64,000 bases of DNA from Selaginella moellendorffii (Eukaryota; Plantae; Lycopodiophyta). Positions 484-53,534 of this stretch are shown one piece after another (within the stretch, counting starts at the first letter, position 1; each line of letters begins with the position of its first letter). The position numbers and the translations under genes are program-made. The stretch spans positions 62,001-126,000 of the forward strand of contig NW_003314309.1 in assembly GCF_000143415.4 (NCBI RefSeq). The letters are read 5' to 3'. Below the pieces are notes generated by a model. The model saw nothing but the letters and a program-made list of their open reading frames with translations, did no database searches and had not been told where the DNA came from.

Positions 484-3456
484 ATGGCCATGTCTCTCGC
501 GGATTTGCTGCTGCCTTTGTTTCTACTCGTCTTTCTCACAAGATCCCGGTCACAGTGCCCCACAAATCCATCTGCAATCGTGAACGACACACAGGTTCTT
601 CTCTCTCTCCGTGACAGGCTTGGCATCAAAGTGTGGAACGAGACTGCCGATCCAAGAGCATGGCGGGGAGTGGAGTGGAGCTCGGACAACCAAGTGGAGG
701 GCCTCGCTCTGTCCAGGTTTAATCTCTCGGGAGTTTTTCCTGCCACCTGGGCCGAGCTTCCATCGCTGGCTCGCCTGGACCTCTCGCAAAACGGCCTCTC
801 CTCGCTGGAAGTCCCTTGCAAAAATACGCAGCTCAACCTCCTCAACTTGAGCTCCAATTCCCTGCAAGAGTTCCCCGGAAATCTCTCCAGCCTCGAGAGT
901 TTGGAAAGCCTGGACCTCAGTGGGAACTTCTTAACAGTGGCCAGACTCCCAAAGTTTAGCTTGACGCTGCGATCGCTCAACCTGTCCATCAACAACTTAA
1001 CTGGGAGCTTTTCCATTGGTGGTAACCTGGGACTGGAGGCACTGGAACTCTCGCAGAACGGACTCAGCGGCTCCATTCCAGAAACTTTCGGGGAGATGAC
1101 GAACTTGACGCGCCTGGACATATCGTATAACAGGTTTAGAGGAGATCTACCCGATATTTGGAGCAAGAACTTGGAGCTCAGGTACATGCGTATCTCCAAC
1201 AATTCGCTTCATGGTGGTTTGCCACCGAGCTTGAGAAGGCTACGCAAGCTCTCTGTTTTACGCGCTGCATACAACTCTCTCTCCGGGCCACTGGAGCTGG
1301 AAGATGGCAACTTTGCAAGCATCGAGGTTTTGAACCTCGGGCTAAACGGGTTTAGCGGAACGATCCCGGCTACGCTGGGAAGCTTGAGGAACTTGAAGAT
1401 CCTGGTTCTCACGGGGAATCATTTTAGTGGCGCCATACCACTGGAGCTTGGAAACTGGTCGAACATCAGAGAGATATGGCTTGACAGCAATAACTTGACT
1501 GGAACAATCCCAGGCGAGCTCTCGAAGCTCTCGCATCTCCAGAAGCTGGTTCTCACGGGGAATCGTTTTAGTGGCGCCATACCGTCGGAGCTTGGAAACT
1601 GGTCGAACATCAGGGAGATATGGCTCAACAGCAATAACTTGACTGGAACAATCCCAGGCGAGCTCTCGAAGCTCTCGCATCTCCAGAAGCTGGTTCTCAC
1701 GGGGAATCGTTTTAGTGGCGCCATACCGTCGGAGCTTGGAAACTGGTCGAACATCAGGGAGATATGGCTCAACAGCAATAACTTGACTGGAACAATCCCA
1801 GGCGAGCTCTCGAAGCTCTCGCATCTCCAGAAGCTGGTTCTCACGGGGAATCGTTTTAGTGGCGCCATACCGTCGGAGCTTGGAAACTGGTCGAACATCA
1901 GGGAGATATGGCTCAACAGCAATAACTTGACTGGAACAATCCCAGGCGAGCTCTCGAAGCTCTCGCATCTCCAGAAGCTGGTTCTCACGGGGAATCGTTT
2001 TAGTGGCGCCATACCTCCAGAGCTTGGAAACTGGTCGAACATCAAAGAGATATGGCTCGATAGCAATAACTTGACTGGAACAATCCCAGGCGAGCTCTCG
2101 AAGCTCTCACATCTCCAGCAGCTGGTTCTCACGGGGAATCGTTTTAGTGGCGCCATCCCAGGCGAGCTCTCGAAGCTCTCGCATCTCCAAAGGGTGGTTC
2201 TCACGGGGAATCGTTTTAGTGGCGCCATACCTCCGGAGCTTGGAAACTGGTCGAACATCAGGGAGATATGGCTCAACAGCAATAACTTGACTGGAACAAT
2301 CCCAGGCGAGCTCTCGAAGCTCTCGCATCTCCAGAAGCTGGTTCTCACGGGGAATCGTTTTAGTGGCGCCATACCTCCAGAGCTTGGAAACTGGTCGAAC
2401 ATCAAAGAGATATGGCTCAACGGCAATGATTTGACTGGAACAATCCCTGGCGAGCTCTCGAAGCTCTCACATCTCCAGCAGCTAGTTCTCAGCAGTAACG
2501 ACATCGGTGGGGAGCTCCCTTCCGGACTCTCCAACTGCACTGAGCTCGTCGTTCTCTGGCTGGGGCAGAACAAGTTCTCTGGAAATCTCCCTGACAGCTT
2601 CGGGAATTTGAGCCGCCTGCTCCTTCTGTCGCTTTCCAGCAACGATCTTGTCGGTTCAATCCCGGCCATATTGCAAAACATGTCGTCTCTGCAGTTCCTC
2701 TTCCTCGACAACAACAGCTTCAGCGGCTCCATACCGGACTGGCTTCCCAGGCTCACGAACTTACGAGCCATGAACTTCTCGGTTAACAGGTTCTCTGGGG
2801 AGATGCCGGAAAGCATTGGCCGACTGTTTGCCAACGTCCAGCTTTACAACAAGAACAAACGGTCTGTGATGATTCAAACCACGCGAGGACTCCTCTACAA
2901 CGGCTTCGCCTTCCCGACCTCCATAGACTTCTCCTTCAACCAGCTGACTGGAAGCATTCCAGCTGCCATTGGCGACCTCTACAAGCTCCAGGTGCTGCAC
3001 CTGAGCCACAACCAGCTAACAGGTCCCATTCCCGAGTCCCTGGGGAAGGCAAGGAATCTCTCCTGGGTGGGGCTCGCAAGCAATCGTCTCAATGGCTCCA
3101 TACCATCGTCCGTGGCGGACCTCTCGTTTCTCACCATCTTCGACGTCTCCAACAACAGCCTGGTGGGACGGATACCTGACAGCCCACAACTCTCGTCCAT
3201 GGACGCGGCTCTCTTCGCTGGGAATCACCTCTGTGGCTTGCCACTGACCAACACCTGTTCGAGCACTGCTATGCCGCCACATAAGCTTAGAACAGAGGGA
3301 CAAGGTGGTAGCGAACAGGACCAAAGAGAGGTGATAGCACTTGTCAGCGTTGGCATCTTCGTGGCAGCCTTCTTCAACGCGTTCTTCTGGACCTACTTTG
3401 CGGCAAACCGCAGAGCTCATTCCCAGCTCTGTGGATGCTGGCAATCAAATCTCTAG
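484..3456 (+). CDS. LRR receptor-like protein (RLP), copy 1, intact, 990 aa
   Basis: Signal peptide, about 34 plant-type LxxLxLxxNxLxGxIP repeats, an island domain before the last four LRRs, C-cap GNHLCGLPLTNTC, TM helix VIALVSVGIFVAAFFNAFFWTYFAA and a short cytoplasmic tail. No kinase; single exon. Confidence 0.95.
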   Translation: MAMSLADLLLPLFLLVFLTRSRSQCPTNPSAIVNDTQVLLSLRDRLGIKVWNETADPRAWRGVEWSSDNQVEGLALSRFNLSGVFPATWAELPSLARLDLSQNGLSSLEVPCKNTQLNLLNLSSNSLQEFPGNLSSLESLESLDLSGNFLTVARLPKFSLTLRSLNLSINNLTGSFSIGGNLGLEALELSQNGLSGSIPETFGEMTNLTRLDISYNRFRGDLPDIWSKNLELRYMRISNNSLHGGLPPSLRRLRKLSVLRAAYNSLSGPLELEDGNFASIEVLNLGLNGFSGTIPATLGSLRNLKILVLTGNHFSGAIPLELGNWSNIREIWLDSNNLTGTIPGELSKLSHLQKLVLTGNRFSGAIPSELGNWSNIREIWLNSNNLTGTIPGELSKLSHLQKLVLTGNRFSGAIPSELGNWSNIREIWLNSNNLTGTIPGELSKLSHLQKLVLTGNRFSGAIPSELGNWSNIREIWLNSNNLTGTIPGELSKLSHLQKLVLTGNRFSGAIPPELGNWSNIKEIWLDSNNLTGTIPGELSKLSHLQQLVLTGNRFSGAIPGELSKLSHLQRVVLTGNRFSGAIPPELGNWSNIREIWLNSNNLTGTIPGELSKLSHLQKLVLTGNRFSGAIPPELGNWSNIKEIWLNGNDLTGTIPGELSKLSHLQQLVLSSNDIGGELPSGLSNCTELVVLWLGQNKFSGNLPDSFGNLSRLLLLSLSSNDLVGSIPAILQNMSSLQFLFLDNNSFSGSIPDWLPRLTNLRAMNFSVNRFSGEMPESIGRLFANVQLYNKNKRSVMIQTTRGLLYNGFAFPTSIDFSFNQLTGSIPAAIGDLYKLQVLHLSHNQLTGPIPESLGKARNLSWVGLASNRLNGSIPSSVADLSFLTIFDVSNNSLVGRIPDSPQLSSMDAALFAGNHLCGLPLTNTCSSTAMPPHKLRTEGQGGSEQDQREVIALVSVGIFVAAFFNAFFWTYFAANRRAHSQLCGCWQSNL
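1384..2463 (+). repeat. Coding tandem array of 15 x 72-bp LRR modules (mainly 144-bp dimer period) in RLP copy 1
   Basis: ACCGTCGGAG recurs at 1581, 1725 and 1869. WSNIREIWL and LSHLQKLVL modules alternate. Confidence 0.95.
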
Positions 3457-5784
3457 CTCGTCCACCATGTTGCTGCCGTCCTTTCTACCTTCCAGTTTGT
3501 AATCCATCACGACTGCTTGATGAAGTGAACTCTTCTTATCCGCTTTCAAGGCCGCCTCCTGTATAGTCTTGAGCTTATCATGATCCCCCCACAGCCCCGC
3601 GCTCCGGTAGATGCTCGCCAGCAGAACGTACGCAGCCGAGTCATTCTCGTCGATCTTCGTCAGTGCCTCGAACGCACTTCCACTTACAGCAGGCCCCGAG
3701 GACGCTCCTCCAAACCACAGCATCCGCTCTCAAAGGCATGCTCTCGAGGACTTTCGGTTACGAGATCCACCAAGCTGCTGTAGTGATGAATCCCGCAAAC
3801 AATGCCAGAGTCCGGGTCCATTGCCTGGAAAAACTCCCTGCCTCGTTCAACTAGGCCGCCGTGGCTGCAAGCAGTGATGACCGAGACAAACGTGATGGCG
3901 TTTGCTCGCACGCCATCTTCTCGCATCTCACGACAGGCTTCGAACATGCGCGACGTGTCACCCTGTTGGCCGAATCCTGTGATCAGTGCATTCCAGGCGA
4001 CGATATCTCGGACTGCCAGAGATCCAAACAAGTGCTCGCACTCATAACTCCGCACTTCCTGTAGAAGTTTACTCCCCACAACTTGATCGTCTTCCAGCCC
4101 ACGCCTGTAAAGCTCAGCCTGGATTTTCCTTCCACTCCAAGAGTTCCAGCCCGAGCTCACTCTCACCGTTGTCTATATATCCCTGTATCGAGCTCGTCCA
4201 AACGACAACGTCCCGGCTAGGCATGCGTTTGAAAACTGCTCGAGCTTTCACCATATCTCCACACTTGGCATACATGTCCACCAAGCTGCTCCCGACAAAT
4301 CTGTGCTCGCAGCGTCCAAACTTCGCGGCGAGAGAATGAATCTCCATCCCCTTTTCTAGGCTCTGGATTCGCACTAGCTTTCCATCTTCTCGCGGAACAG
4401 GTGGCTCGGACGCTGAAAGGTGGATGCAGGCCATGAGCGCAGCAACAAACGTTCTCTCGTCCGGATCGTTCTCCCGAGCCATGCCAAAGACACCTCCAAG
4501 GCCAGCTTGCTGTCTCCACTTACATCGGCCAGCCATGCCATCGAAGACCTTGCGAGCTTCCTCNNNNNNNNNNNNNNNNNNNNNNNNNNNNNNNNNNNNN
4601 NNNNNNNNNNNNNNNNNNNNNNNNNNNNNNNNNNNNNNNNNNNNNNNNNNNNNNNNNNNNNNNCGGTTTCCAAGCTCTTTCTCTTCACGAGTTTGCCGTC
4701 GACATCCACCGCTTCTTCTCGCATTGCCGAGCTCGCACAGGCGGCAAGCGCAGCAACACACGTCTGAGAGTTTGGACAGCACCCAGATAGCTTCATATCT
4801 TCGAAGAACACGAGAGCCAGCTTGCTTTCCCCGTTGTCCACAAAGCCTTGTATCAAGCTCGTCCAGAGCACCACATCACGACGAGGCATGCTCTCGAAAA
4901 CCATCCGCGCGTCGACCATGCTCCCACACTTTGAGTACATGGTACTTGGCTGCTCCCCACGAAGATATCTCCACAGCAGTGGCTTTTCACAGCTCCATCG
5001 TGAACAGCGAGCCCCTTTTCCAGGCTCTTCGTCTTCACCATCTTTTGGTGGCCTCCTCTTTCACTGCTAGATTCGCACAAGCCTTGGCAGCAGCAACGAA
5101 AGTCCAAGACTTTGGCGAGCAGTCCATTTTCCCAAAGAACTCGAGAGCGACCTCACTTTCTCCATTCTCTACGTAGCCCAGTATCAACGCGTTCCAGGAG
5201 ACCACGTCTCACTGTGACATCTCATCGAAGACCGATCGAGCATCGAGCATGATGCCGCACTTAGCTCGAGAGGAAAACGTCTTCGCTGCAAGACGGTCCC
5301 ATCTGCTTGGCTTGAGAATGGATGCCTCTGCCGGTCTCGAGACTAGCCTCCTTGACGAGCTTCCCATCGACCAAAACAGCGTCTTCCTTCGCCGCGAGGC
5401 TGCTACAAGCCTTTGCCGCGTCCTGGAGTTTGGCTTGCAGCCCGACCGCCTGGCTTGCATCCTCTCGAAGAGATCCAGAGCCACATCACTCTCGCCATTG
5501 GAGACGTAGCCCAGCATCAAGGACATCACGTTTGGGTGAAGAATGCTGTGGAACAGTCCTCCATGCTGCCGCATTTCGCGTACGTTTTTCGTCCACCAGC
5601 GCATTGACAACAAGCTGCTTGTTCTCCGCCGCCTGGCCGTGGATCGCCCAGGCGCAAATTGCCCTTGCGCAAATCCCTTGTGACCTTCAACGCCGACACC
5701 TGCTGATCGGGCGCCCGCGGCGGCGCTGCCGAAGGAGCGAATGCCGGTGCGGCGCATCGAATCGCTGCCATCGCCAAGTCTCAT
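3445..5784 (-). pseudogene. PLS/E-class pentatricopeptide repeat (PPR) pseudogene, copy 1
   Basis: Motifs such as SSLVDMYAKCGDMVKARAVFKRMPSRDVVVWTS and NAITFVSVITACSHGGLVERG, and an E-domain-like DSAAYVLLASIY, are scattered over several frames. No DYW domain seen. Confidence 0.9.
4564..4663. other. Assembly gap (100 N)
   Basis: Run of n. The corresponding interval in unit 4 (54672-54769) is 98 bp. Confidence 1.
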
Positions 5785-7636: not shown

Positions 7637-8422
7637 GGAATGGCTTGTTTTAACATTTAAAGGAATGATTGCAAAACATATAAAATTTTAGCTTTTAGAT
7701 TGGGATGGATATTTGCTGTTTCTTTGGTATATGTATATCACGGGGTATAAAGTTCCATTGGTGCTTCACTTTATAAACTTTTATGTGGTCATTATTTGAT
7801 ATTACTAATGGAGTTGAGTTTACCTTCGTGATTGCTATAAACTGCCAATACTAAGTCTTGGGATCAACATTTGATGAGCATTTTTCCATTCATTCAAGTG
7901 GAGTTTATTGAGCATTTAGGCTATGTATAAATGGGATAATAACAACACAACAACTTCCATCATCATCCACCAATGGAGTATAAAGTGGATGATTTGGTGT
8001 TAATCCATTTTCCTAATGTTACAATATATGGTTTGTGTAAGGGGCTCTTTATTCAGTGGAAGAGATTATATTAAGTGTTTTGGTAAGTTAAACTGCATGT
8101 TTATAAAGCTTGGCAAAACATTCAATAAACTAATCCTCCAGAAATTATATATATGCAATAACTTAAATGTTTTGTATAAAGGGATCAAGCATTACCTATA
8201 AATCCACCAGTGCCTCCTCCTGATGTTCCTTTAGATCCTAGTCTCTCAACCTGAAAACCTTAACTACCTTTCATCCTTCTAAAAGAATAAGATAATATGA
8301 GGTCTAAGTGTATACCTATGATATTGTATATAAATATTAGTATAATTTTCAAACCACTCACTTCTGTATATAAACTATGGTTTTTGGGCTAATTAAGATG
8401 CATATTTCTATATGCACTAAGA
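7637..8422 (+). mobile_element. Old, C-to-T eroded remnant (integrase 3' part plus 3' LTR) of the same gypsy family as 28174-33165, unit 1
   Basis: Aligns by eye with the reverse complement of ~28174-29020 (e.g. GAGTATAAAGTGGATGATTTGGTGTTA; LTR core CTGTATATAAACTATGGTTTTTGGGCTAATT). Confidence 0.85.
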
Positions 8423-8861: not shown

Positions 8862-9256
8862 TGTAAGCTCCTGAATTTAGACTTCCTAGAAGGTCATCTA
8901 GCTTAGTACTATTCAAACCCAAGAACACTTAATACAAAATATCCCAAAACTTTTAATCGATTGGAAAAAAGGGTACACTCTTATTTATAGGCCCTTTCCT
9001 TTTATATTTGAACCCTATGAATTATCTCTCTCTTTAGTTATTAAGAATCCAATACACTTCTTTGCAAATTCATGCCCTTGTGAATGGAAGTTGAGAGCAA
9101 TAGCTCTCTAGAGAGCCTTACTCTTTTGACACCCTACCCCTTGGGTTGAACCTAGCCGGAGCAAATTAAACCTGCCAAATATCAATTAACATATAGTGCA
9201 ATTCCCTTAACTAACCAACAATATAGACCGTTTCTTGAGTCATTTTTTTTTGTTGC
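8862..9256 (-). mobile_element. Cassandra-type TRIM, internally deleted copy (unit 1)
   Basis: 5S-rRNA-like segment at 8881-8932. The PBS and most of the 5' LTR are missing relative to the unit 2 copy. Confidence 0.8.
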
Positions 9257-18141: not shown

Positions 18142-20275
18142 ATGGCCATGTCTCTCGCGGATTTGCTGCTGCCTTTGTTTCTACTCGTCTTTCTCACAAG
18201 ATCCCGGTCACAGTGCCCCACAAATCCATCCGCAATCGTGAACGACACACAGGTTCTTCTCTCTCTCCGTGACAGGCTTGGCATCAAAGTGTGGAACGAG
18301 ACTGCCGATCCAAGAGCATGGCGGGGAGTGGAGTGGAGCTCGGACAACCAAGTGGAGGGCCTCGCTCTGTCCAGGTTTAATCTCTCGGGAGTTTTTCCTG
18401 CCACCTGGGCCGAGCTTCCATCGCTGGCTCGCCTGGACCTCTCGCAAAACGGCCTCTCCTCGCTGGAAGTCCCTTGCAAAAATACGCAGCTCAACCTCCT
18501 CAACTTGAGCTCCAATTCCCTGCAAGAGTTCCCCGGAAATCTCTCCAGCCTCAAGAGTTTGGAAAGCCTGGACCTCAGTGGGAACAACTTAACAGTGGCC
18601 AGACTCCCAAACTTTAGCTTGATGCTGCGATCGCTCAACCTGTCCATCAACAACTTAACTGGGAGCTTTTCCATTGGTGGTAACCTGGGACTGGAGGCAC
18701 TGGAACTCTCGCACAACGGACTCAGCGGCTCCATTCCAGAAACTTTCGGGGAGATGACGAACTTGACGCGCCTGGACATATCGTATAACAGGTTTAGAGG
18801 AGATCTACCCGATATTTGGAGCAAGAACTTGGAGCTCAGGTACATGCGTATCTCCGAAAATTCGCTCCAGGGTGGTTTGCCACCGAGCTTGAGAAGGCTA
18901 CGCAAGCTCTCGGAATTACACGCTGCATACAACTCTCTCTCCGGGCCACTGGAGCTGGAAGATAGCGACTTTGCAAGCATCGAGGTTTTGGACCTCGGGC
19001 TAAACGGGTTTAACGGAACGATGCCGGCTACGCTGGGAAGCTTGAGGAACATCAGAGAGATATGGCTCGACAGCAATAACTTGACTGGAACAATTCCAGG
19101 CGAGCTCTCGAAGCTCTCGCATCTCCAGAAGCTGGTTCTCATGGGGAATCGTTTTAGTGGCGCCATCCCAGGCGAGCTCTCGAAGCTCTCGCATCTCCAG
19201 CATCTCGTTCTCACCGGAAATCGTTTTAGTGGCGCCATACCTCCGGAGCTTGGGAACTGCTCGAACATCAGACAGATCTTGCTCGACAGCAATAACTTGA
19301 CTGGAACAATCCCAGGCGAGCTCTCGAAGCTCTCGCATCTCCAGAAGCTGGTTCTCAGCAGGAACGACTGAGCTCGTCGTTCTCTGGCTGGGGCAGAACA
19401 AGTTCTCTGGAAATCTCCCTGACAGCTTCGGGAATTTGAGCCGCCTGCTCCTTCTGTCGCTTTCCAGAAACGATCTTGTCGGTTCAATCCCGGCCATATT
19501 GCAAAACATGTCGTCTCTGCAGTTCCTCTTCCTCTCAAACAACAGCTTCAGCGGCTCCATACCGGACTGGCTTCCCAGGCTCACGAACTTACGAGCCATG
19601 GACTTCTCGGGTAACAGGTTCTCTGGGGAGATGCCGGAAAGCATTGGCCGACTGTTTGCCAACGTCCAGCTTTACAACAAGAACAAACGGTCTGTGATGA
19701 TTCAAACCGGGGGAGGACTCGTCTACAACGGCTTCGCCGTCCCGACCTACATAAACTTCTCCTTCAACCAGCTGACTGGAAGCATTCCAGCTGCCATTGG
19801 CGACCTCTACAAGCTCCAGGTGCTGGACCTGAGCCACAACCAGCTCATTCCCGAGTCCCTGGGGAAGGCAAGGAATCTCTCCTGGGTGGGGCTCGCAAGC
19901 AATCGTCTCAATGGCTCCATACCATCGTCCGTGGCGGACCTCTCGTTTCTCAGCTTCTTCGACGTCTCCAACAACAGCCTGGTGGGACGGATACCTGACA
20001 GCCCGCAACTCTCGTCCATGGACGCGGCTCTCTTCGCTGGGAATCAGCTCTGTGGCTTGCCACTGACCAACACCTGTTCGAGCACTGCTATGCCGCCACA
20101 TAAGCTTAGAACAGAGGGACAAGGTGGTAGCGAACAGGACCAAGGAGGCGTGACAACACTTGTCAGCATCGCCATCTTCGTGGCAGCCTTCTTCAACGCG
20201 TTCTTCTGGACCTACTTTGCGGCAAACCACAGAGCTCATTCCCAGCTCTGTGGATGCTGGCAATCAAATCTCTAG
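18142..20275 (+). pseudogene. LRR-RLP copy 2, frameshifted
   Basis: A 38-bp deletion at ~19368 (AACGAC|TGAGCTC) creates a stop at 19371. There is a 9-bp in-frame deletion at ~19845. Only 4 variable LRR modules (19042-19329). Confidence 0.92.
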
Positions 20276-22605
20276 CTCGTCCACCATGTTGCTGCCGTCC
20301 TTTCTACCTTCCAGTTTGTAATCCATCACGACCGCTTGATGAAGTGAACTCTTCTTATCCGCTTTCAAGGCCGCCTCCTGTATAGTCTTGAGCTTGTCAT
20401 GATCCTCCCACAGCCCCGCGCTCCGGTAGATGCTCGCCATCAGAACGTACGCAGCCGAGTCATTCTCGTCGATCTTCGTCAGTGCCTCGAACGCACTTCC
20501 ACTTACGGCAGGCCCCGAGGAGGCTCCTCCAAACCACAGCATCCGCTCTCAAAGGCATGCTCTCGAGGACTTTCAAGGCCTCTTCCAGTCGGTTACGAGA
20601 TCCACCAAGCTGCTGTAGTGATGAATCCCGCAAACAATGCCAGAGTCCGGGTCCATTGCCTGGAAAAACTCCCTGCCTCGTTCAACTAGGCCGCCGTGGC
20701 TGCAAGCAGTGATGACCGAGACAAACGTGATTGCGTTTGCTCGTACGCCATCTTCTCGCATCTCGCGACAGGCTTCGAACATGCGCGACGTGTCACACTG
20801 TTGGCCGAATCCTGTGATCAGTGCATTCCAGGCGACGATATCTCGGACTGCCAGAGATCCAAACAAGTGCTCGGCCGCACTCATAACTCCGCACTTCCTG
20901 TAGAAGTTTACTCCCCACAACTTGATCGTCTTCCAGCCCACGCCTGTAAAGCTCAGCCTGGATTTTCCTTCCACTCCAAGAGTTCCAGCCCGAGCTCACT
21001 CTCACCGTTGTCTATATATCCCTGTATCGAGCTCGTCCAAACGACAACGTCCCGGCTAGGCATGCGTTTGAAAACTGCTCGAGCTTTCACCATATCTCCA
21101 CACTTGGCATACATGTCCACCAAGCTGCTCCCGACAAATCTGTGCTCGCAGCGTCCAAACTTCGCGGCGAGAGAATGAATCTCCATCCCCTTTTCTAGGC
21201 TCTGGATTCGCACTAGCTTTCCATCTTCTCGCGGAACAGGTGGCTCGGACGCTGAAAGGTGGACGCAGGCCATGAGCGCAGCAACAAACGTTCTCTGGTC
21301 CGGATCGTTCTCCCGAGCCATGCCGAAGAACAGCTCCCAAGGCCAGCTTGCTGTCTCCACTTACATCGGCCAGCCATGCCATCGAAGACCTTGGGAGCTT
21401 CCTCTAGCTTCTCACACTTCGCGTACCTATCGATCAGAGTGTTCCCCACGAACACGTCCTCGCAGCACCTGTTGTTTGAAGCTTCGCTGTGGATAGCCAC
21501 CCCGGTTTCCAAGCTCTTTCTCTTCACGAGTTTGCCGTCGACATCCACCGCTTCTTCTCGCATTGCCGAGCTCGCACAGGCGGCAAGCGCAGCAACACAC
21601 GTCCGAGAGCTTGGACAGCACCCAGATAGCTTCATATCTTCGAAGAACACGAGAGCCAGCTCGCTTTCCCCGTTGTCCACAAAGCCTTGTATCAAGCTCG
21701 TCCAGAGCACGACATCACGACGAGGCATGCTCTCGAAAACCATCCGCGCGTCGACCATGCTCCCACACTTTGAGTACCTGTCACTTGGCTGCTCCCCAGG
21801 AAGATATCTCCACAGCAGTGGCTTTTCACAGCTCCATCGTGAACAGCGAGCTCCTTCTCCAGGCTCTTCGTCTTCACCATCTTTTGGTGGCCTCCTCTTT
21901 CACTGCTAGATTCGCACAGCCCTTGGCAGCAGCAACGAAAGTCCGAGAGTTTGGCGAGCAGCCCATCTTCCCAAAGAACTCGAGAGCGACCTCGCTTTCT
22001 CCATTCTCTACGTAGCCCAGTATCAACGCGTTCCAGGAGACCACGTCTCGCTGTGGCATCTCATCGAAGACCGATCGAGCATCGAGCATGATGCCGCACT
22101 TGGCTCGAGAGGAAAACGTCTTCGCTGCAAGACGGTCCCATCTGCTTGGCTTGAGAATGGATGCCTCTACTGGTCTCGAGACTAGCCTCCTTGACGAGCT
22201 TCCCATCGACCAAAACAGCGTCTTCCTTCGCCGCAAGGCTGCTACAAGCCTTGCAGCCCGACCGCCTGGCTTGCATCCTCTCGAAGAGATCCAGAGCCAC
22301 ATCGCTCTCGCCATTGGAGACGTAGCCCAGCATCAAGGACATCACGTTTGGGTGAAGAATGCTGTCGAACACACGGTGGGAATCCTCCATGCTGCCGCAT
22401 TTCGCGTACATGTCCACCAGCGCATTGACAACAAGCTGCTTGTTCTCCGCCGCCTGGCCGTGGATCGCCCAGGCGCAAATTGCCCTTGCGCAAATCCCTT
22501 GTGACCTTCAACGCCGACACCTGCTGATCGGGCGCCCGCGGCGGCGCTGCCGAAGGAGCGAATGCCGGTGCGGCGCATCGAATCGCTGCCGTCGCCAAGT
22601 CTCAT
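20264..22605 (-). pseudogene. PLS/E-class PPR pseudogene, copy 2
   Basis: Same PPR motifs as copy 1 (e.g. DVFVGNTLIDRYAKCEKLEEA), split across frames. Confidence 0.9.
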
Positions 22606-35544: not shown

Positions 35545-38500
35545 ATGGCCATGTCTCTCGCGGATTTGCTGCTGCCTTTGTTTCTAATCGTCTTTCTCAC
35601 AAGATCCCGGTCACAGTGCCCCACAAATCCATCCGCAATCGTGAACGACACACAGGTTCTTCTCTCTCTCCGTGACAGGCTTGGCATCAAAGTGTGGAAC
35701 GAGACTGCCAATCCAAGAGCATGGCGGGGAGTGGAGTGGAGCTCGGACAACCAAGTGGAGGGCCTCGCTCTGTCCAGGTATAATCTCTCGGGAGTTTTTC
35801 CTGCCACCTGGGCCGAGCTTCCATCGCTGGCTCGCCTGGACCTCTCGCAAAACGGCCTCTCCTCGCTGGAAGTCCCTTGCAAAAATACGCAGCTCAACCT
35901 CCTCAACTTGAGCTCCAATTCCCTGCAAGAGTTCCCCGGAAATCTCTCCAGCCTCGAGAGTTTGGAAAGCCTGGACCTCAGTGGGAACTTCTTAACAGTG
36001 GCCAGACTCCCAAAGTTTAGCTTGACGCTGCGATCGCTCAACCTGTCCATCAACAACTTAACTGGGAGCTTTTCCATTGGTGGTAACCTGGGACTGGAGG
36101 CACTGGAACTCTCGCACAACGGCCTCAGCGGCTCCATTCCAGAAACTTTCGGGGAGATGACGAACTTGACGCGCCTGGACATATCGTATAACAGGTTTAG
36201 AGGAGATCTACCCGATATTTGGAGCAAGAACTTGGAGCTCAGGTACATGCGTATCTCCGAAAATTCGCTCCAGGGTGGTTTGCCACCGAGCTTGAGAAGG
36301 CTACGCAAGCTCTCGGAATTACACGCTGCATACAACTCTCTCTCCGGGCCACTGGAGCTGGAAGATGGCGACTTTGCAAGCATCGAGGTTTTGAACCTCG
36401 GGGTAAACTGGTTTAGCAGAACGATCCCGGCTACGCTGGGAGGCTTGAGGAACATCAGAGAGATATGGCTCTACAGCAATAACTTGACTGGAACAATCCC
36501 AGGCGAGCTCTCGAAGCTCTCGCATCTCCAGAAGCTGGTTCTCATGGGGAATCGTTTTAGTGGCGCCATTCCAGGCGAGCTCTCGAAGCTCTCGCATCTC
36601 CAGCTGCTGGTTCTCACGGGGAATCGTTTTAGTGGCGCCATACCTCCAGAGCTTGGAAACTGGTCGAACATCAGAGAGATATGGCTCGACAGCAATAACT
36701 TGACTGGAACAATCCCAGGCGAGCTCTCGAAGCTCTCGCATCTCCAGAAGCTGGTTCTCAGGGGGAATCGTTTTAGTGGCGCCATTCCAGGCGAGCTCTC
36801 GAAGCTCTCGCATCTCCAGCTGCTGGTTCTCACGGGGAATCGTTTTAGTGGCGCCATACCTCCGGAGCTTGGAAACTGGTCGAACATCAGAGAGATATGG
36901 CTCGGCAGCAATAACTTGACTGGAACAATCCCAGGCGAGCTCTCGAAGCTCTCGCATCTCCAGCTGCTGGTTCTCACGGGGAATCGTTTTAGTGGCGCCA
37001 TACCTCCAGAGCTTGGAAACTGGTCGAACATCAGAGAGATATGGCTCGACAGCAATAACTTGACTGGAACAATCCCAGGCGAGCTCTCGAAGCTCTCGCA
37101 TCTCCAGCTGCTGGTTCTCACGGGGAATCGTTTTAGTGGCGCCATACCTCCAGAGCTTGGAAACTGGTCGAACATCAGAGAGATATGGCTCGACAGCAAT
37201 AACTTGACTGGAACAATCCCAGGCGAGCTCTCGAAGCTCTCGCATCTCCAGAAGCTGGTTCTCAGGGGGAATCGTTTTAGTGGCGCCATTCCAGGCGAGC
37301 TCTCGAAGCTCTCGCATCTCCAGCTGCTGGTTCTCACGGGGAATCGTTTTAGTGGCGCCATACCTCCGGAGCTTGGAAACTGGTCGAACATCAGAGAGAT
37401 ATGGCTCGGCAGCAATAACTTGACTGGAACAATCCCAGGCGAGCTCTCGAAGCTCTCGCATCTCCAGCTGCTGGTTCTCACGGGGAATCGTTTTAGTGGC
37501 GCCATACCTCCAGAGCTTGGAAACTGGTCGAACATCAGAGAGATATGGCTCGACAGCAATTACTTGACTGGAACAATCCCAGGCGAGCTCTCGAAGCTCT
37601 CGCATCTCCAGATGCTGGTTCTCAACAGGAACGACATGGGCGGGGAGCTCCCTTCCGGACTCTCCAACTGCACCGAGCTCGTTAGTCTCTGGCTGGACCA
37701 GAACAAGTTCTCTGGAAATCTCCCTGACAGCTTCGGGAATTTGAGCCGCCTGTTCCTTCTGTCGCTTTACAGCAACGATCTTGTCGGTTCAATCCCGGCC
37801 ATGTTGCAAAACATGTCGGCTCTGCAGTTCCTCTTCCTCTCAAACAACAGCTTCAGCGGCTCCATACCGGACTGGCTTCCCAGGCTCACGAACTTACGAG
37901 CCATGGACTTCTCGGTTAACAGGTTCTCTGGGGAGATGCCGGAAAGCATTGGCCGACTGTTTGCCAACGTCCAGCTTTACAACAAGAACAAACGGTCTGT
38001 GATGATTCAAACCGGGCAAGGACTCGTCTACAACAGCTTCGCCTTCCCGACCTACATAAACTTCTCCTTCAACCAGCTGACTGGAAGCATTCCAGCTGCC
38101 ATTGGCGACCTCTACAAGCTCCAGGTGCTGGACCTGAGCCACAACCAGCTAACAGGTCCCATTCCCGAGTCCCTGGGGAAGGCAAGGAATCTCTCCGACG
38201 TGGCGCTTGCGAGCAATCGTCTCAATGGCTCCATACCATCGTCCGTGGCGGACCTCTCGTTTCTCACCTTCTTTGACGTCTCCAACAACAGCCTGGTGGG
38301 ACGGATACCTGACAGCCCGCAACTCTCGTCCATGGACGCGGCTCTCTTCGCTGGGAATCAGCTCTGTGGCTTGCCACTGACCAACACCTGTTCGAGCACT
38401 GCTATGCTGCCACATAAGCTTAGAACAGAGGGACAAGGTGGTAGCGAACAGGACCAAACAGAGGTGATAACACTTGTCAGTGTTGCGATCTTCGTGGCAG

Positions 38501-38589
38501 CCTTCTTCAACGCGTTCTTCTGGACCTACTTTGCGGCAAACCACAGAGCTCATTCCCAGCTCTGTGGATGCTGGCAATCAAATCTCTAG
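35545..38589 (+). CDS. LRR receptor-like protein, copy 3, intact, 1014 aa
   Basis: Same architecture as copy 1 with one more LRR module. Continuous ORF. Confidence 0.95.
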   Translation: MAMSLADLLLPLFLIVFLTRSRSQCPTNPSAIVNDTQVLLSLRDRLGIKVWNETANPRAWRGVEWSSDNQVEGLALSRYNLSGVFPATWAELPSLARLDLSQNGLSSLEVPCKNTQLNLLNLSSNSLQEFPGNLSSLESLESLDLSGNFLTVARLPKFSLTLRSLNLSINNLTGSFSIGGNLGLEALELSHNGLSGSIPETFGEMTNLTRLDISYNRFRGDLPDIWSKNLELRYMRISENSLQGGLPPSLRRLRKLSELHAAYNSLSGPLELEDGDFASIEVLNLGVNWFSRTIPATLGGLRNIREIWLYSNNLTGTIPGELSKLSHLQKLVLMGNRFSGAIPGELSKLSHLQLLVLTGNRFSGAIPPELGNWSNIREIWLDSNNLTGTIPGELSKLSHLQKLVLRGNRFSGAIPGELSKLSHLQLLVLTGNRFSGAIPPELGNWSNIREIWLGSNNLTGTIPGELSKLSHLQLLVLTGNRFSGAIPPELGNWSNIREIWLDSNNLTGTIPGELSKLSHLQLLVLTGNRFSGAIPPELGNWSNIREIWLDSNNLTGTIPGELSKLSHLQKLVLRGNRFSGAIPGELSKLSHLQLLVLTGNRFSGAIPPELGNWSNIREIWLGSNNLTGTIPGELSKLSHLQLLVLTGNRFSGAIPPELGNWSNIREIWLDSNYLTGTIPGELSKLSHLQMLVLNRNDMGGELPSGLSNCTELVSLWLDQNKFSGNLPDSFGNLSRLFLLSLYSNDLVGSIPAMLQNMSALQFLFLSNNSFSGSIPDWLPRLTNLRAMDFSVNRFSGEMPESIGRLFANVQLYNKNKRSVMIQTGQGLVYNSFAFPTYINFSFNQLTGSIPAAIGDLYKLQVLDLSHNQLTGPIPESLGKARNLSDVALASNRLNGSIPSSVADLSFLTFFDVSNNSLVGRIPDSPQLSSMDAALFAGNQLCGLPLTNTCSSTAMLPHKLRTEGQGGSEQDQTEVITLVSVAIFVAAFFNAFFWTYFAANHRAHSQLCGCWQSNL
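36445..37596 (+). repeat. Coding tandem array of 16 x 72-bp LRR modules with a 504-bp higher-order repeat in RLP copy 3
   Basis: CTCAGGGGGAAT occurs at 36757 and 37261 (504 bp apart). Modules 4-9 recur as modules 11-16. Confidence 0.95.
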
Positions 38590-40902
38590 CTCGTCCACCA
38601 TGTTGCTGCCGTCCTTTCTACCTTCCAGTTTGTAATCCATCACGACCGCTTGATGAAGTGAACTCTTCTTATCCGCTTTCAAGGCCGCCTCCTGTATAGT
38701 CTTGAGCTTATCATGATCCTCCCACAGCCCCACCCTCCGGTAGATGCTCGCCATCAGAACGTACGCAGCCGAGTCATTCTCGTCGATTCTTCGTCAGTGC
38801 CTCGAACGCAATCCTCCCCACTTCCACTTACGGCAGGCCCCGAGGACGCTCCTCCAAACCCCAGCATCCGCTCTCAAAGGCATGCTCTCGAGGACTTTCA
38901 CGGCCTCTTCCAGTCGGTTAAGAGATCCACCAAGCTGCTGTAGTGATGAATCCCGCAAACAATGCCAGAGTCCGGGTCCATTGCCTGGAAAAACTCCCTG
39001 CCTCGTTCAACTAGGCCGCCGTGGCTGCAAGCAGTGATGACCGAGACAAATGTGATTGCGTTTGCTCGCACGCCATCTTCTCGCATCTCGCGAAAGGCTT
39101 CGAACACGCGCGACATGTCACCCTGTTGGCCGAATCCCGTGATCAGTGCATTCCAGGCGACGATATCTCGGACTGCCAGAGATCCAAACAAGTGCTCGGC
39201 CGCACTCATAACTCCGCACTTCCTGTAGAAGTTTACTCCCCACAACTTGATCGTCTTCCAGCCCACGCCTGTAAAGATCAGCCTAGGCCGTAAGTCCCGC
39301 TACAAGAGTCCGAGAGTTTGGAGCACAGTCCACTGCAAGAGTTCCAGCCGGAGCTCACTCTCACCGTTGTCTATATATCCCTGTATCAAGCTCGTCCAAA
39401 CGACAACGTCCCGGCTAGGCATGCGTTTGAAAACTGCTCGAGCTTTCACCATATCTCCACACTTGGCATACATGTCCACCAAGCTGCTCCCGACAAATCT
39501 GTGCTCGCAGCGTCCAAACTTCGCGGCGAGAGAATGAATCTCCATCCCCTTTTCTAGGCTCTGGATTCGCACTAGCTTTCCATCTTCTCACGGAACAGGT
39601 GGCTCGGACGCTGAAAGCGCAGCAACAAACGTTCTCTCGTCCGGATCGTCCTCCCGAGCCATGCCGAAGAACAGCTCCAAGGCCAGCTTGCTGTCTCCAC
39701 TTACATCGGCCAGCCATGCCATCGAAGACCTTGCGAGCTTCCTCTAGTTGTTTGAAGCTTCACCGTGGATAGCCACCCCGGTTTCCAAGCTCTTTCTCTT
39801 CACGAGTTGCCGTCGACATCCACCGCTTCTTCTCGCATTGCCGAGCTCGCACAGGCGGCAAGCGCAGCAACACACGTCCGAGAGCTTGGACAGCACCCAG
39901 ATAGCTTCATATCTTCGAAGAACACGAGAGCCAGCTCGCTTTCCCCGTTGTCCACAAAGCCTTGTATCAAGCTCGTCCAGAGCACGACATCACGACGAGG
40001 CATGCTCTCGAAAACCATCCGCGCGTCGACCATGCTCCCACACTTTGAGTACCTGTCACTTGGCTGCTCCCCAGGAAGATATCTCCACAGCAGTGGCTTT
40101 TCACAGCTCCATCGTGAACAGCGAGCTCCTTCTCCAGGCTCTTCGTCTTCACCATCTTTTGGTGGCCTCCTCTTTCACTGCTAGATTCGCACAGCCCTTG
40201 GCAGCAGCAACGAAAGTCCGAGAGTTTGGCGAGCAGCCCATCTTCCCAAAGAACTCGAGAGCGACCTCGCTTTCTCCATTCTCTACGTAGCCCAGTATCA
40301 ACGCGTTCCAGGAGACCACGTCTCACTGTGGCATCTCGTCGAAGACCGATCGAGCATCGAGCATGATGCCGCACTTAGCTCGAGAGGAAAACGTCTTCGC
40401 TGCAAGACGGTCCCATCTGCTTGGCTTGAGAATGGATGCCTCTGCCGGTCTCGAGACTAGCCTCCTTGACGAGCTTCCCATCGACCAAAACAGCGTCTTC
40501 CTTCGCCGCGAGGCTGCTACAAGCCTTTGCCGCGTCCTGGAGTTTGGCTTGCAGCCCGACCGCCTGGCTTGCATCCTCTCGAAGAGATCCAGAGCCACAT
40601 CGCCCAGACGTAGCCCAGCATCAAGGACATCACGTTTGGGTGAAGAATGCTGTCGAACACACGGCGGGAATCCTCCATGCTGCCGCATTTCGCGTACATG
40701 TCCACAAGCGCATTGACAACATGGATCCCCAGCTGCTTGCTCTCCGCCGCCTGGGCGTGGATCGCCCAGGCGCAAATTGCCCTTGCGCAAATCCGTTGTG
40801 ACCTTCAACGCCGACACCTGCTGATCGGGCGCCCGCGGCGGCGCTGCCGAAGGAGCGAATGCTGGTGCGGCGCATCGAATCGCTGCCGTCGCCAAGACTC
40901 AT
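38578..40902 (-). pseudogene. PLS/E-class PPR pseudogene, copy 3
   Basis: PPR motifs split across frames, with extra deletions. Confidence 0.9.
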
Positions 40903-44903: not shown

Positions 44904-47900
44904 GAGCTTGTAGAGGAACATCACCTTTTGTGCCACTTCTTGCACTAAGCTTTTGTCAAGGTCTCCTTCCAGGCTCTCCACAAGATATGACATATGGTAT
45001 GCTTGAACCTGGCTGGGAAAGAGCTTCACCACCTCCGTGACGTTCAAGTAGTGAGTAACGACGAGCGTGAAGCATTGAACCTCTTGGAGAAGGTGATGGA
45101 GCGTCGCATACGCGATGGGGATGCCGTCGTGCGTGCTGGTTCCTCTTCCCAGCTCGTCGATGACTACCAGCGAGCGAGAAGTTGCCTTGTGGAGAATAGT
45201 TGAAGCTTCGCTCAGCTCCTCGAAAAACGTACTGGAGCCCCTCTGGATTCTGTCCATCGCCCCCATTCTCGTAAACACGGCATCAAATACATGCAGTTTG
45301 GCTGTCGCGGCTGGAACATACGATCCTATCTGCACGATAACAAAACATACGGAGTGAAAAGAAATAAAGATACTGGGACATGATTGTGATTAGAGCAACT
45401 TGACGGATGTAGCAACTTTTACCACCCATGTTTGGACCAGTGATTATTTGCGATCGTTCACCCTCACCAGAAACAACTGTGTCATTTGGTACAAATGCAT
45501 CTTGCAGAGTCGAATCTAGGACCTGCTCACGGAAAGAAATCTCAGTAAAAATATTAAACGACAAGAGCAAAAGAAACAAACCGGATGTCGACCACCTTCT
45601 ATCTTCAAAAGGCACGCTTCATCCACGAACTCCGGTCGAACATACCCCTGAAGCACATTTTCATTCAGATAAGCGTTGAAAAACACAAGGAGACAGACCT
45701 GATTGCACGAGACAACAGCAAGGGAATAAAGACAGTCGAGAGCTGCTAGTGCCTGTACTGCAGCCCGGAACTCCATGTGATAGGAGGTAAAGTCAGTCAG
45801 GAACATGTCCCATGCTTTGGCGCAAGATATATTTAATTGCTCCTTTGCAAGTGCCATTCTTTCCGATGCTTCCAAGACCTCCGGAGGATGAAAGCGGTTT
45901 GCCTTTTTCGTACTGTTTATTTTAACCCAATCTGCAGGTACACGCTGCGCACATGGAACCTGAAACTACAAGCTTTTAGCAATCAAATAACTGAATTGAG
46001 AAAAAGAAGGTACCTGGACCAAAAACGACGTTCCCGAGACGCTCAAGTATTCCAGATTTGAACACTTCAACAGTTTCCGATAACTGGGAAGAAAACTTTC
46101 GAGATCCTCCTCAATACTTTTTATGGTCTCTTTGCATTCGTCTACCTGAAACACGACTTAAACGAAGTCTGGGAAACGATAACAAAACCTCGGGAAACTG
46201 GCCGGCAACAAACAAGTTAATCTTATCCCCGGCAGCTGCTGCCTCTGCATTCAAACTCGTCACAAGCTTGTTTGCGTGATCTATCACTGAAGTTGAAGTC
46301 ACTGCGGAGATTAGCCTGCTGAGGAGCGCAGACCTGGCGTCGCGAACCCGTTGAAACTGGGACGCTGCTTTCATAATCGCATTAATCACGTTAATGAACT
46401 GCAGCAAACATTACGGTCAGAAAAGAATAACATACAGGATTACAGAAAAGCAAAGGTACCTCATACGTTGTTGCTGTTTTGTGATAAATTCTTGTGATAC
46501 CACGCTCAAGATCAGGCGATTTTCCCAGCAGCAACAACGTTGAAGCTAAAGTTGCAACTGTTGTACCTCTGCCTTTATCTCCAATGGATTCGGCAATTTC
46601 CGCAACGGCGTCTAAACGTTGAGAAATGAGCATGCGGTCTCTTAACGGATGGGTCACCTGAAAATAGACATGAATGAAAAAACGAAAAATCCAAAATTGT
46701 GACTGAGACCAAACTCCTTACCCAATACTTAAGCAGCCTCGCGCCAAAAGCAGTTTTTGTGTGGTTCATAAGCCAGAATAAAGATCCGTTTTCAGTACCA
46801 TCAGTTTGGTTATGTAGAATCTAGAAAGAAAAAACTTGTTACTGGCAAGTAAACATCGCATTCAGTGGTTACCTCAAGCTGGCGGATGGTATTGGGCGAG
46901 AGCGTCATCTCTTGCTGCCCGGCAAATGGTCGGAAAAGAGCTCCTAAGCGCAATACATTTTCCAGATGAAACTGCTTCAGATAAGCAAATATATGCGCAA
47001 ACGCAGCAACCACGATTTCTGGCATCGTCATCAACGCCTGCAAACTTCAATTCTCATCCGATAGTGTAATCAAGACAACTAGAAAATCACCTCCAGCCCT
47101 CCATCAACCTTCTCGTCCAGACAGCCTTTCTTAGAAGGCGCCAAGCTCCCGTAGAAGTCCGCAAGAGCAGCAACAGGACCGCCATTTTCAAACGAGTTCT
47201 CAGGCGTCTTCTCGACTCGAACATCCGCTGCGCCTGCATAGTCCATCAACAACTATAGAAAAATCACCATCATTCATATACAACCCGATCAGAGAAAAGA
47301 AAACAGCTTACCTTCTTTGTAGAAGCGGACAAGGACGCAGATAAAAGAAGTTCTGCGGGAGCACACGCAAGCAACCGTGATTCCAGTTCCGTCCTGGTGA
47401 CAGTGTCCATGAAGTGACCATACATCACGTCTCCGGTCGAGGTTTCCACGGCCACCACCCCAAATCTAGCATCAAAACTTCCCCTCACTTCATCCTTTCC
47501 AGCGTTGGCCTTGCGCTCGGTGATTGCCTCCTCCACAACACACATGATATAGCTGCTCAGACGAATAGGTCCATCCCTTTCCCCGCTCTCTTCTCCCCCA
47601 AGAAACTCGCCCGCCTCGAGCGTGGCCTTGGTATATAGCGCCGAGAGATCTCTCGAGAACGGGCCAGCCTTGTTCGTCCCGTGAGCTTTGATAGCCGCTG
47701 TCTCGGTCTGCTTGACAACGCCAACTTTGTAGCCAGCTTCCACAAGCCTTCTCACATGTACGTGCAGCCGGAACGTTGGAACGCTGGCAGTGAGAAAGTT
47801 GTGGCTGTAGTAAGCAACGATTCCCAAAACATTGGCTGCTTTCTCCGCATCCTCTCCGAAAAATCGAAACTTGTATCCCACCTCGACCATGAGAAGGACG

Positions 47901-48307
47901 TCTGGGAATTTCTTCTTGAGCTCCACAATCTGCTGCTCCAGAGGAGTAAGCTTCTCCTTCCTTGACGGCGGCTTTCCATAAAAGGAGGGATTTCCACCAC
48001 CGCCATCCCTGTCCCCCTCTCCAAGAAGAACATCTACAAACTTTCTACGCCTGTCTTTAATCGCTTCCCCCGATACTCCGCAATCGGCATCCTTCCCATC
48101 GCCCGACCCGGCGTCTACATCTAAATTCAAGCACCGTTTCTTACTCGCGCTGGCCGCATTCTCGGCTGATCGCCTGAGATGATACGGCGATGGCCACACA
48201 AGTGTGGGAGCCCGCGATGCATCGGTCTCACCTCGCTTGAAGAAGCTGGGGATGATCGCCTGGCCCTTGGCGGCGGCAGCGCCCTCGTCCTTCTTTCTCT
48301 TTCCCAT
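44904..48307 (-). pseudogene. MSH3: MSH3, near-complete but C-terminally truncated; one splice donor deleted (unit 3)
   Basis: Intact domain I exon (47270-48307), Walker A GPNMGGKS and Walker B DELGRGTST. A 9-bp deletion at ~45372 removes the GT donor present in unit 1. Homology stops at FLYKL, before the SFG/helix-turn-helix region. Confidence 0.85.
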
Positions 48308-51529: not shown

Positions 51530-53534
51530 TCTCTCCGTGACAGGCTTGGCATCAAAGTGTGGAACGAGACTGCCAATCCAAGAGCATGGCGGGGAGTGGA
51601 GTGGAGCTCGGACAACCAAGTGGAGGGCCTCGCTCTGTCCAGGTTTAATCTCTCGGGAGTTTTTCCTGCCACCTGGGCCGAGCTTCCATCGCTGGCTCGC
51701 CTGGACCTCTCGCAAAACGGCCTCTCCTCGCTGGAAGTCCTTTGCAAAAATACGCAGCTCAACCTCCTCAACTTGAGCTCCAATTCCCTGCAAGAGTTCC
51801 CCGGAAATCTCTCCAGCCTCGAGAGTTTGGAAAGCCTGGACCTCAGTGGGAACTTCTTCACAGTGGCCGGACTCCCAAACTTTAGCTTGACGCTGCGATC
51901 GCTCAACCTGTCCATCAACAACTTAACTGGGAGCTTTTCCATTGGTGGCACTGGAACTCTCGCACAACGGACTCAGCGGCTCCATTCCAGAAACTTTCGG
52001 GGAGATGACGAACTTGACGCGCCTGGACATATCGTATCACAGGTTTAGAGGAGATCTACCCGATATTTGGAGCAAGAACTTGGAGCTCAGGTACATGGGT
52101 ATCTCCAACAATTCGCTCCAGGGTGGTTTGCCACCGAGCTTGAGAAGGCTACGCAAGCTCTCGGATTTACGCGCTGCATACAACTCTCTCTCCGGGCCAC
52201 TGGAGCTGGAAGATGGCGACTTTGCAAGCATCGAGGTTTTGAACCTCGGGCTAAACTGGTTTAGCGGAACGATCCCGGCTACGCTGGGAGGCTTGAGGAA
52301 CTTGAAGATCCTGGTTCTCACGGGGAATCGTTTTAGTGGCACCATCCCAGGCGAGCTCTCGAAGCTCTCGCATCTCCAGCTGCTGGTTCTCACGGGGAAT
52401 CGTTTTAGTGGTGCCATACCTCCGGAGCTTGGAAACTGTTCGAACATCAGAGGGATACGCCTCGACAGCAATTACTTGACTGGAACAATCCCAGGCGAGC
52501 TCTCGAAGCTCTCACATCTCCAGCAGCTAGTTCTCAGCAGCAACGACATCGGCGGGGAGCTCCCTTCCGGACTCTCCAACTGCACCGTGCTCGTCGTTCT
52601 CTGGCTGGGAAAGAACAAGTTCTCTGGAAATCTCCCTGAGAGCTTCGGGGATTTGAGCCGCCTGCTCATTCTGGAGCTTTCCAGCAACGATCTTGTCGGT
52701 TCAATCCCGGCCATGTTGCAAAACATGTCGGCTCTGCAGTTCCTCATCCTCGAAAACAACAGATTCAGTGGCTCCATACCGGACTGGCTTCCCAGGCTCA
52801 CGAACTTACGAGCCATGGACTTCTCGGTTAACAGGTTCTCTGGGGAGATGCCGGAAAGCATTGGCCGACTGTTTGCCAACGTCCAGCTTTACAACAAGAG
52901 CAAACGGCATATGATGATTCAAACCGGAGGACTCGTCTACAACGGCTTCGCCTTCCCGACCTTCATAGACTTCTCCTTCAACCAGCTGACTGGAAGCATT
53001 CCAGCCGCCATTGGCGACCTCTACAAGCTCCAGGTGCTGGACCTGAGACACAACCAGCTAACAGGTCCCATTCCCGAGTCCCTGGGGAAGGCAAGGAATC
53101 TCTCCAAGGTGTGGCTCGCGGGGAATCGTCTCAATGGCTCCATACCATCGTCCGTGGCGGACCTCTCGTTTCTCACCATCTTCGACGTCTCCAACAACAG
53201 CCTGGTGGGACGGATACCTGACAGCCCGCAACTCTCGTCCATGGACGCGGCTCTCTTCGCTGGGAATCAGCTCTGTGGCTTGCCACTGACCAACACCTGT
53301 TCGAGCACTGCTATGCCGCCACATAAGCTTAGAACAGAGGGACAAGGTGGTAGCGAACAGGACCAAAGAGAGGTGATAACACTTGTCAGCGTTGCGATCT
53401 TCGTGGCAGCCTTCTTCAACGCGTTCTTCTGGACCTACTTTGCGGCAAACCACAGAGCTCATTCCCATGCTGGCAATCAAATCTCTAGCTCGTCCACCAT
53501 GTTGCTGCCGTCCTTTCTACCTTCCAGTTCGTAA
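51530..53534 (+). pseudogene. LRR-RLP copy 4, 5'-truncated and frameshifted
   Basis: Promoter, ATG and signal peptide are absent. There is a 17-bp deletion at ~51948 and a 10-bp deletion at ~53467 that alters the C-terminus. 3 variable modules (52293-52508). Confidence 0.92.

Follow-up and report, generated by a model that had tools for sequence, protein, structure and literature searches.

A kinase-less receptor cluster with expanded leucine-rich repeat arrays in Selaginella moellendorffii, probably derived from a PSKR/PSY1R-like kinase

The cluster

We analyzed a 64 000-nucleotide stretch of the lycophyte Selaginella moellendorffii (assembly GCF_000143415.4, contig NW_003314309.1, forward-strand positions 62 001–126 000), hereafter the window. 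It carries four tandem paralogs of a leucine-rich repeat (LRR) receptor-like protein (RLP), numbered copies 1–4, each with an internal array of LRR modules. Judging by their sequences, we think it fairly likely that they form a young cluster of RLPs of the island+4-LRR type, which arose from a PSKR/PSY1R-like kinase by duplication and kinase loss and evolves like the immune RLPs of angiosperms.

Comparing the window with itself divides it into four tandem units of 16–18 kb, each consisting of an RLP gene and a convergent PPR gene (Table 1). A MutS fragment lies 3' of units 1 and 3, and Gypsy remnants lie 3' of units 2 and 4. This alternation points to a 35-kb higher-order duplication, which makes copies 1 and 3 positional twins. 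The AT-rich spacer agrees: of its 82 informative sites, 43 group unit 1 with unit 3 and unit 2 with unit 4. All four PPR genes are frameshifted, whereas two 3-kb RLP frames remain open. These belong to copies 1 and 3, the only intact ones, as an earlier note on this DNA had said; copies 2 and 4 are broken by deletions. The frames require no spliced model, and the broken copies were left as pseudogenes.

The protein has the features of the RLP class, namely a signal peptide (called from a hydrophobic N-terminal helix), 24-amino acid plant extracellular LRRs, a single transmembrane (TM) helix and a short tail, without a kinase. An island precedes the last four LRRs, as in island+4-LRR RLPs. Among the motifs defined for RLPs (QxxT/S, penultimate-LRR Phe, acidic juxtamembrane end; PMC10834447), the SERK-contact loop QxxT/S is present as PQLSS and the Phe as LSF in copies 1 and 3. 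Their last seven juxtamembrane residues are net acidic, where the parent kinase described below ends in RRK; the conserved Glu of the penultimate LRR is missing in both. An AlphaFold model (mean predicted local distance difference test score, pLDDT, 88.5; predicted template modeling score, pTM, 0.70) shows one continuous LRR solenoid, a poorly defined island and a TM helix. A fold search and a PDB sequence search returned generic plant LRR receptor ectodomains, in a ranking driven largely by length.

Table 1. Features of the window (positions numbered from its first base)
Feature	Position	Strand	Description
RLP copy 1	484..3456	+	Intact, 990 aa: signal peptide, 30 LRRs, island, 4 LRRs, juxtamembrane, TM, short tail; no kinase
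Copy-1 array	1384..2463	+	15 modules, order 0ABABABABACBABA
Terminal LRR (ancestral LRR13)	2464..2535	+	Supplied the 5' third of all B and C modules
Island domain, copy 1	2824..2913	+	~30 aa, residues 781-810, low pLDDT; followed by 4 LRRs
TM helix, copy 1	3331..3399	+	Homologous to parent kinase TM
PPR pseudogene, unit 1	3529..5777	-	Frameshifted, convergent with copy 1
Poly(A) loose end, run X19	3549	+	Non-templated, 93 nt 3' of stop; genome not A-rich there; assignable to no single paralog
Assembly gap (N run)	4564..4663	.	Within unit-1 PPR pseudogene, 1.1 kb 3' of copy-1 stop
RLP copy 2	18142..20275	+	Pseudogene: frameshifting 38-bp deletion 3' of array, stop 19369-19371
Copy-2 array	19042..19329	+	4 modules, order ACBA
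PPR pseudogene, unit 2	20348..22598	-	
RLP copy 3	35545..38589	+	Intact, 1014 aa, 31 + 4 LRRs
Copy-3 array	36445..37596	+	16 modules, order ACBACBABABACBABA
PPR pseudogene, unit 3	38662..40895	-	
RLP copy 4	51530..53534	+	Pseudogene: start codon/signal peptide gone, 17-bp frameshift deletion, 10-bp tail deletion
Copy-4 array	52293..52508	+	3 modules, order 0BA
PPR pseudogene, unit 4	53569..55647	-	

Module arrays

Each module is 72 bp long and encodes one 24-amino acid LRR. There are four types: A, B, C (a hybrid that starts as B and ends as A) and an entry module, 0. On recount, the array coordinates and module numbers of the earlier note (15, 4, 16 and 3) proved exact. Its picture of two interchangeable modules, A and B, captures a real modular array but misses the C hybrid and the entry module. 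The 144-bp period that it saw in copy 1 corresponds to an exact 388-bp repeat with that period, starting at 1484 and accompanied by an older ~360-bp duplication. Its 504-bp higher-order repeat in copy 3 is a tandem duplication with 486 bp of exact repeat, which begins at 36571. Most of the variants proposed as diagnostic are so: PSELG (three modules) and WLNS (four modules) are private to copy 1, and LRG and WLGS to copy 3, but QLL is common to copies 3 and 4. The view that the paralogs differ chiefly in the array needs qualifying; the array does differ, and there are differences outside it too, mostly at exposed LRR residues.

Origin of the receptors and their modules

The best protein matches, both from S. 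moellendorffii, are a 1056-amino acid LRR receptor kinase (XP_024524005, P0001) and a 684-amino acid kinase-less relative (P0002); the window DNA is 86–90% identical to their loci. Neither the protein searches nor an exact look-up turned up a database entry for any window copy or for a second haplotype of the cluster; the parent kinase and one short RLP were all that emerged. The kinase is present on both haplotypes (loci L001 and L003) and has 18 LRRs, an island and 4 LRRs, with a single LRR11, LRR12 and LRR13. Short RLPs at L001 16889-18979 and L002 10001-12140 likewise have 18 LRRs, island and 4 LRRs with single LRR11/12/13, and at both loci they keep the same PPR neighbor as the window copies. 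The synonymous distance between the window RLPs and the kinase is ~0.2, and by homology the RLP TM is inherited from it. LRR-only genes derived from LRR receptor-like kinases are common (PMC7318236).

The kinase has the PSKR/PSY1R layout (17–18 LRRs, island, 4 LRRs and kinase), with an island of ~30 amino acids versus 36–38 for that clade (PMC4030839). In a tree of the C-terminal (C3) region it groups with PSKR/PSY1R/RLP3 at 91/90, which is below the strict threshold, and some outgroup rows of the tree are not true terminal regions. It falls outside the Cf-9-like/EIX RLP group, Cf-2 itself having been left out of the tree. An Atlas search gave no subfamily-level assignment for it. Because of the C-terminal grouping, and because BRI1 is the best PDB match of the kinase domain, we class the parent by sequence as an LRR-Xb kinase, probably a PSKR/PSY1R-like one.

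We painted the modules base by base according to ancestral source. Module A is LRR12. In module B the 5' third comes from LRR13 and the remainder from LRR11, with the junction in the shared LVL codons, and module C is B with an LRR12 end, joined at the A/T-I-P codons. Since B and C are crossover hybrids of LRRs 11–13, the arrays were built by ordinary unequal recombination, as the earlier note had proposed. B occurs in all four copies, so the first duplication is older than any of them; the loss of one downstream LRR is also common to all four.

Several observations concern the short RLPs. One lies with a PPR remnant ~3.7 kb downstream of the parent kinase on one haplotype (L001); the other haplotype (L003) diverges after ~16.9 kb and has no short RLP within the flank covered, a case of presence/absence variation. 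Both short RLPs have 8 extra bases 3' of the TM relative to the window copies (L001 near 18930-18979; L002 near 12040-12140), which shift the tail frame, and the window copies retain the parent's YFA..RR.H tail frame. The L002 short RLP carries internal frameshifting deletions. A SET/Rubisco-substrate-binding gene lies, on opposite strands, upstream of both the parent kinase (L001:5430-7911) and the L002 RLP (L002:7908-9591), and hints that the RLP is of segmental origin.

Expansion and exchange

Exact module duplicates are confined within single copies; no two copies have an identical module in common. For same-type modules of copies 1 and 3, distance is smaller within copies than between them, for A (2.1 versus 2.9, p=0.009) as for B (1.6 versus 3.9, p=0.002). 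The latest expansions were therefore independent. The claim that the long arrays expanded independently thus stands for these copy-specific rounds. Because B predates the copies, the first two array modules of copies 2 and 3 are almost exactly alike, and copies 1 and 3 are positional twins, earlier growth is as likely to have happened in a multi-module ancestor of the copies, followed by shrinkage in copies 2 and 4, as separately from a short form.

Informative sites in the RLP+PPR block depart from the flanking tree: 1 of 43 follows it, compared with 43 of the spacer's 82 (p=2e-9). For copies 2, 3 and 4, which sit on one contig, the shared-derived sites divide 17/8/8. Because of this departure and this split, the sequence exchange between paralogs that the earlier note had suggested is likely, with tracts that are not sharply resolved (p=0.07-0.36) and have no detectable direction. 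In the PPR region the informative sites fall strongly into blocks (p=5e-5), but this pattern is given less weight, as one switch straddles the assembly gap and clustering is non-significant in copies 2–4 alone.

Selection on the receptor surface

Outside the array, 31 of the 95 exposed LRR codons vary among the four copies compared with 26 of the 434 other codons (p=3e-11), and 8 of 32 island codons vary. Nonsynonymous distance (pN) at the exposed codons is 0.07-0.145, versus a synonymous distance (pS) of 0.02-0.04 and a neutral PPR pseudogene distance of 0.019-0.030; exposed residues outside the array change 3–6 times faster than synonymous sites. For copy 1 versus copy 3, exposed pN is 0.121, pS 0.038 (p=9e-5) and backbone pN 0.012. 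Pairs of parent kinases and short RLPs have no such excess, with an exposed pN of ~0.04 below a pS of ~0.1. Inside the arrays of copies 1 and 3, amino acid variants also favor exposed codons (10 versus 4, p=1e-4).

Public sequence runs

Four public runs, all of them contigs and of guessed type, were compared with window positions 1-4560. Their contigs span the RLP gene and the PPR region with almost nothing upstream of 314, and run X19 has a poly(A) end. Coverage that starts near the gene, together with this end, makes the runs look like RNA. In X1, 824 bp have 1 difference from copy 1 and 31–42 from the other copies, and a 199-bp piece carries four copy-1-private sites; in X2, 396 bp have 4 differences from copy 1 and 15–22 from the others. 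The runs thus include alleles of copy 1. A 174-bp A-B-A piece from X1 differs at 6 positions from the corresponding reference stretch and fits long-array order only. The reference stretch itself has 4 mismatches to copy 3, 21–24 to the short copies and at least 47 to the parent. Multi-A arrays therefore exist in another sample. Two variants of this piece recur in X6, in a combination not seen among the B modules of the window.

The PPR pseudogene region at 3529-4560 is covered by contigs in all four runs, with insertions that match other paralogs. One or another PPR copy may therefore have antisense transcription running toward the 3' end of the RLP.

Neighboring genes and repeats

The duplicated MutS gene fragments (domains I-II) at 12146-13183 and 47270-48307, both on the minus strand, ride in units 1 and 3 of this recombining cluster. 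The Gypsy-type remnants at 28565-32779 (unit 2) and 60391-64000 (unit 4) are 88% identical to each other, and a 176-bp direct repeat (28174-28349 and 32991-33166) may represent terminal repeats. Inverted, decayed copies of Gypsy ends lie in the spacer of every unit (7637-8413, 24542-25142, 42865-43605 and 57556-58321); they are 68–78% identical to the Gypsy ends at 28201-29017 and 60391-60830 with which they were compared. Two ~197-bp direct repeats at 25763-26358, 80% identical and starting TGTAA, fit a small terminal-repeat retrotransposon in miniature (TRIM), and solo copies of the repeat occur at 8862-9027 and 44042-44226. An Rfam search of the window gave no match, including no 5S match for the 25763-26358 repeats.

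Interpretation

We favor the following history for the cluster. Ectodomain and TM descend from the kinase XP_024524005, and short 18-LRR RLPs survive at two other loci. Mispairing of LRR11 with LRR13 at the LVL codons duplicated 144 bp and made B, and a second crossover at the A/T-I-P codons made C. Within each gene the near-identical modules then gave rise to further unequal crossovers, in frame and of 144, 360 or 504 bp, a step that is shown for the latest rounds. Exposed beta-strand residues and the island diversified faster than neutral, both in and outside the array. For copies 1 and 3 we infer an immune role: they may be surface receptors for changing non-self ligands, recruiting SERK through the conserved last LRRs and signaling via a partner kinase, either SOBIR1 or the parent kinase. 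Array change, as read from these genes, is germline birth-and-death evolution rather than programmed assembly.

Several points weigh against this reading. Selection was assessed by simple counts between pairs of four sequences that recombine, two of which are pseudogenes, rather than by codon-model tests, and contig runs carry neither expression level nor array length. The island motif Kx5Y/Yx8K was looked for in the island sequences and is absent. GxxxG was looked for in the RLP TM and is absent, with only GxxxA and AxxxA present; it occurs in >80% of the island+4-LRR RLP clade and is tied to SOBIR1 binding (PMC10834447). Finally, the concave face of the array is largely homogenized, so array length itself may not be selected.

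This last point leads to a possible, if doubtful, alternative in which diversifying selection is real but array length is a mutational runaway without benefit, specificity residing in the flanking LRRs and the island. It is compatible with an immune-type cluster except on the value of length. The perfect 388- and 486-bp repeats add identical surfaces and none that is new, the strongest selection signal falls outside the array, and all length changes are multiples of 72 bp and hence escape frameshift purging. Set against this, exposed codons carry an excess of the module variants, it is the variable LRR region that determines specificity in Cf-2/Cf-5 (PMC4030839), and both intact copies are long and both broken ones short, although four genes make this a weak argument. 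We regard it as rather improbable that the RLPs have a non-immune role, modulating or decoying the parent kinase's peptide signaling or letting plants or gametes tell self from non-self. Such a role would suit RLPs that derive from an LRR-Xb kinase, have inherited its TM and lack GxxxG, and even in angiosperms it is unclear what PSKR/PSY1R-like RLPs do (PMC10834447). However, a decoy for a conserved peptide should itself be conserved, whereas here the island is rewritten and exposed sites change at 3–6 times the neutral rate, unlike those of the parent.

The long arrays might also be partly assembly artefacts, with exact repeats over-counted or alleles stitched together and copy 1 perhaps misplaced across the gap, but we consider this improbable. 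The reference is, we assume, a Sanger-era assembly holding both haplotypes; the arrays have perfect internal repeats and are longer than a typical Sanger read, one switch in the informative-site pattern straddles the gap, and the cluster's other haplotype is absent from the protein search results. The gap hits no RLP frame or array, but it is the sole link of copy 1 to copies 2–4. The corresponding flanks are separated by 100 bp in unit 4 and by ~99 bp in unit 2, so that contig collinearity across it is plausible. Neither long array contains an N, and the longest exact tracts (spanning ~530 bp in copy 1 and 486 bp per unit in copy 3) are bordered on both sides by distinguishing bases. With exact duplicates removed, copy 1 still has at least 11 modules and copy 3 at least 9, and the A-B-A piece from another sample matches long-array order alone. 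Least probable by far is a cassette system, possibly a somatic one, in which the long genes receive copies from pseudogenes or module stores, loosely like lamprey variable lymphocyte receptors (VLRs) or pathogen antigenic variation. The modules are interchangeable, the 17/8/8 sites conflict with a single tree, and copies 2 and 3 share an array start. Yet the long genes are complete in the reference, and the window holds no free cassettes, module matches falling only inside the four genes. The suggestion that the pseudogenes act as donors finds no support either: they total 7 modules, none identical to a module of copies 1 or 3, and the amplified private variants PSELG, WLNS, LRG and WLGS are absent from them. 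Where paralogs did exchange sequence, no direction can be detected, and within one contig the tracts are not significantly clustered.

Comparison with known receptors

The closest parallel is tomato Cf-2/Cf-5 (Hcr2), also a tandem cluster of island+4-LRR RLPs with a near-identical two-LRR super-motif and paralogs that differ in LRR number. Cf-2/Cf-5 have tandem two-LRR super-motif repeats and 18–33 pre-island LRRs (PMC4030839), and in Hcr2 intragenic recombination varies the number of 24-amino acid LRRs within a nearly identical nucleotide repeat (PMC7468133). Pre-island LRRs here number 18–31, and copies 1 and 3, with 30 and 31, are inside the Hcr2 range. Unlike Hcr2, the cluster has an independent lycophyte origin, a kinase parent still present at a pS of ~0.2, different module sequences, no GxxxG and, as read from the island sequences, no Yx8KG island motif (motif from PMC4030839). 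Common descent with solanaceous Hcr2 is not supported, the immediate parent being a Selaginella kinase. On these sequence comparisons the cluster works like Hcr2 and is not a member of the Hcr2 family.

With tomato Cf-4/Cf-9 (Hcr9) it shares tandem RLP paralogs, hypervariable exposed LRR residues and sequence exchange. Hcr9 genes are under diversifying selection and have no such repeats (PMC7468133); the Selaginella cluster joins the Hcr2 and Hcr9 modes in one gene. Arabidopsis RLP2 and RLP3 and the PSY1R- and PSKR-like RLPs, which derive from LRR-Xb kinases, have the same kinase-less PSKR/PSY1R-type ectodomain; such RLPs are known, and RLP3 confers Fusarium resistance (PMC10834447). RLP2 stays at 18+4 LRRs (PMC4030839), whereas the Selaginella ectodomain has grown to 30–31+4 and diversified.

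Lamprey VLRs likewise have 24-residue LRR modules of varying number and order. In VLRs an incomplete germline gene is completed somatically from a large cassette library, whereas the open reading frames here are complete and no free cassette library is seen in the window.

Near-identical runs in other angiosperm LRR proteins among the matches, a biased sample, are 150–299 amino acids long, versus 290 and 370 here. Runs of 200–299 amino acids occur in P0153, P0199 (Rubroshorea), P0181 (Macadamia) and P0232 (Carex). The comparison suggests that Cf-2-like arrays arise repeatedly. The earlier note had held that scale and within-gene homogenization stand out; tomato Hcr2 genes equal them (PMC4030839, PMC7468133), and the angiosperm runs reach 299 amino acids. 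The mechanism is already known. What is new is the independent lycophyte origin, the traceable path from kinase to RLP, and array expansion together with surface hypervariability.

Significance

An ancient common origin has been proposed for immune RLPs and growth-hormone receptor kinases (PMC10834447). Elsewhere the steps of that origin are hidden by age; here the series can be read base by base in one genome, from kinase through short RLP and first hybrid module to expanded, positively selected RLP. The Cf-2 mode has been described as a recent feature peculiar to Solanaceae, yet a lycophyte evolved it independently. More speculatively, in a reading more likely wrong than right, the lycophyte may have re-run the birth of immune RLPs from an LRR-Xb kinase, with products that signal without the GxxxG/SOBIR1 interface, possibly via the parent kinase, and with module number and order that vary among individuals and set specificity. 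The matched parent and offspring receptors offer a test bed for how a developmental ectodomain becomes a non-self sensor, and for how LRR number relates to specificity.

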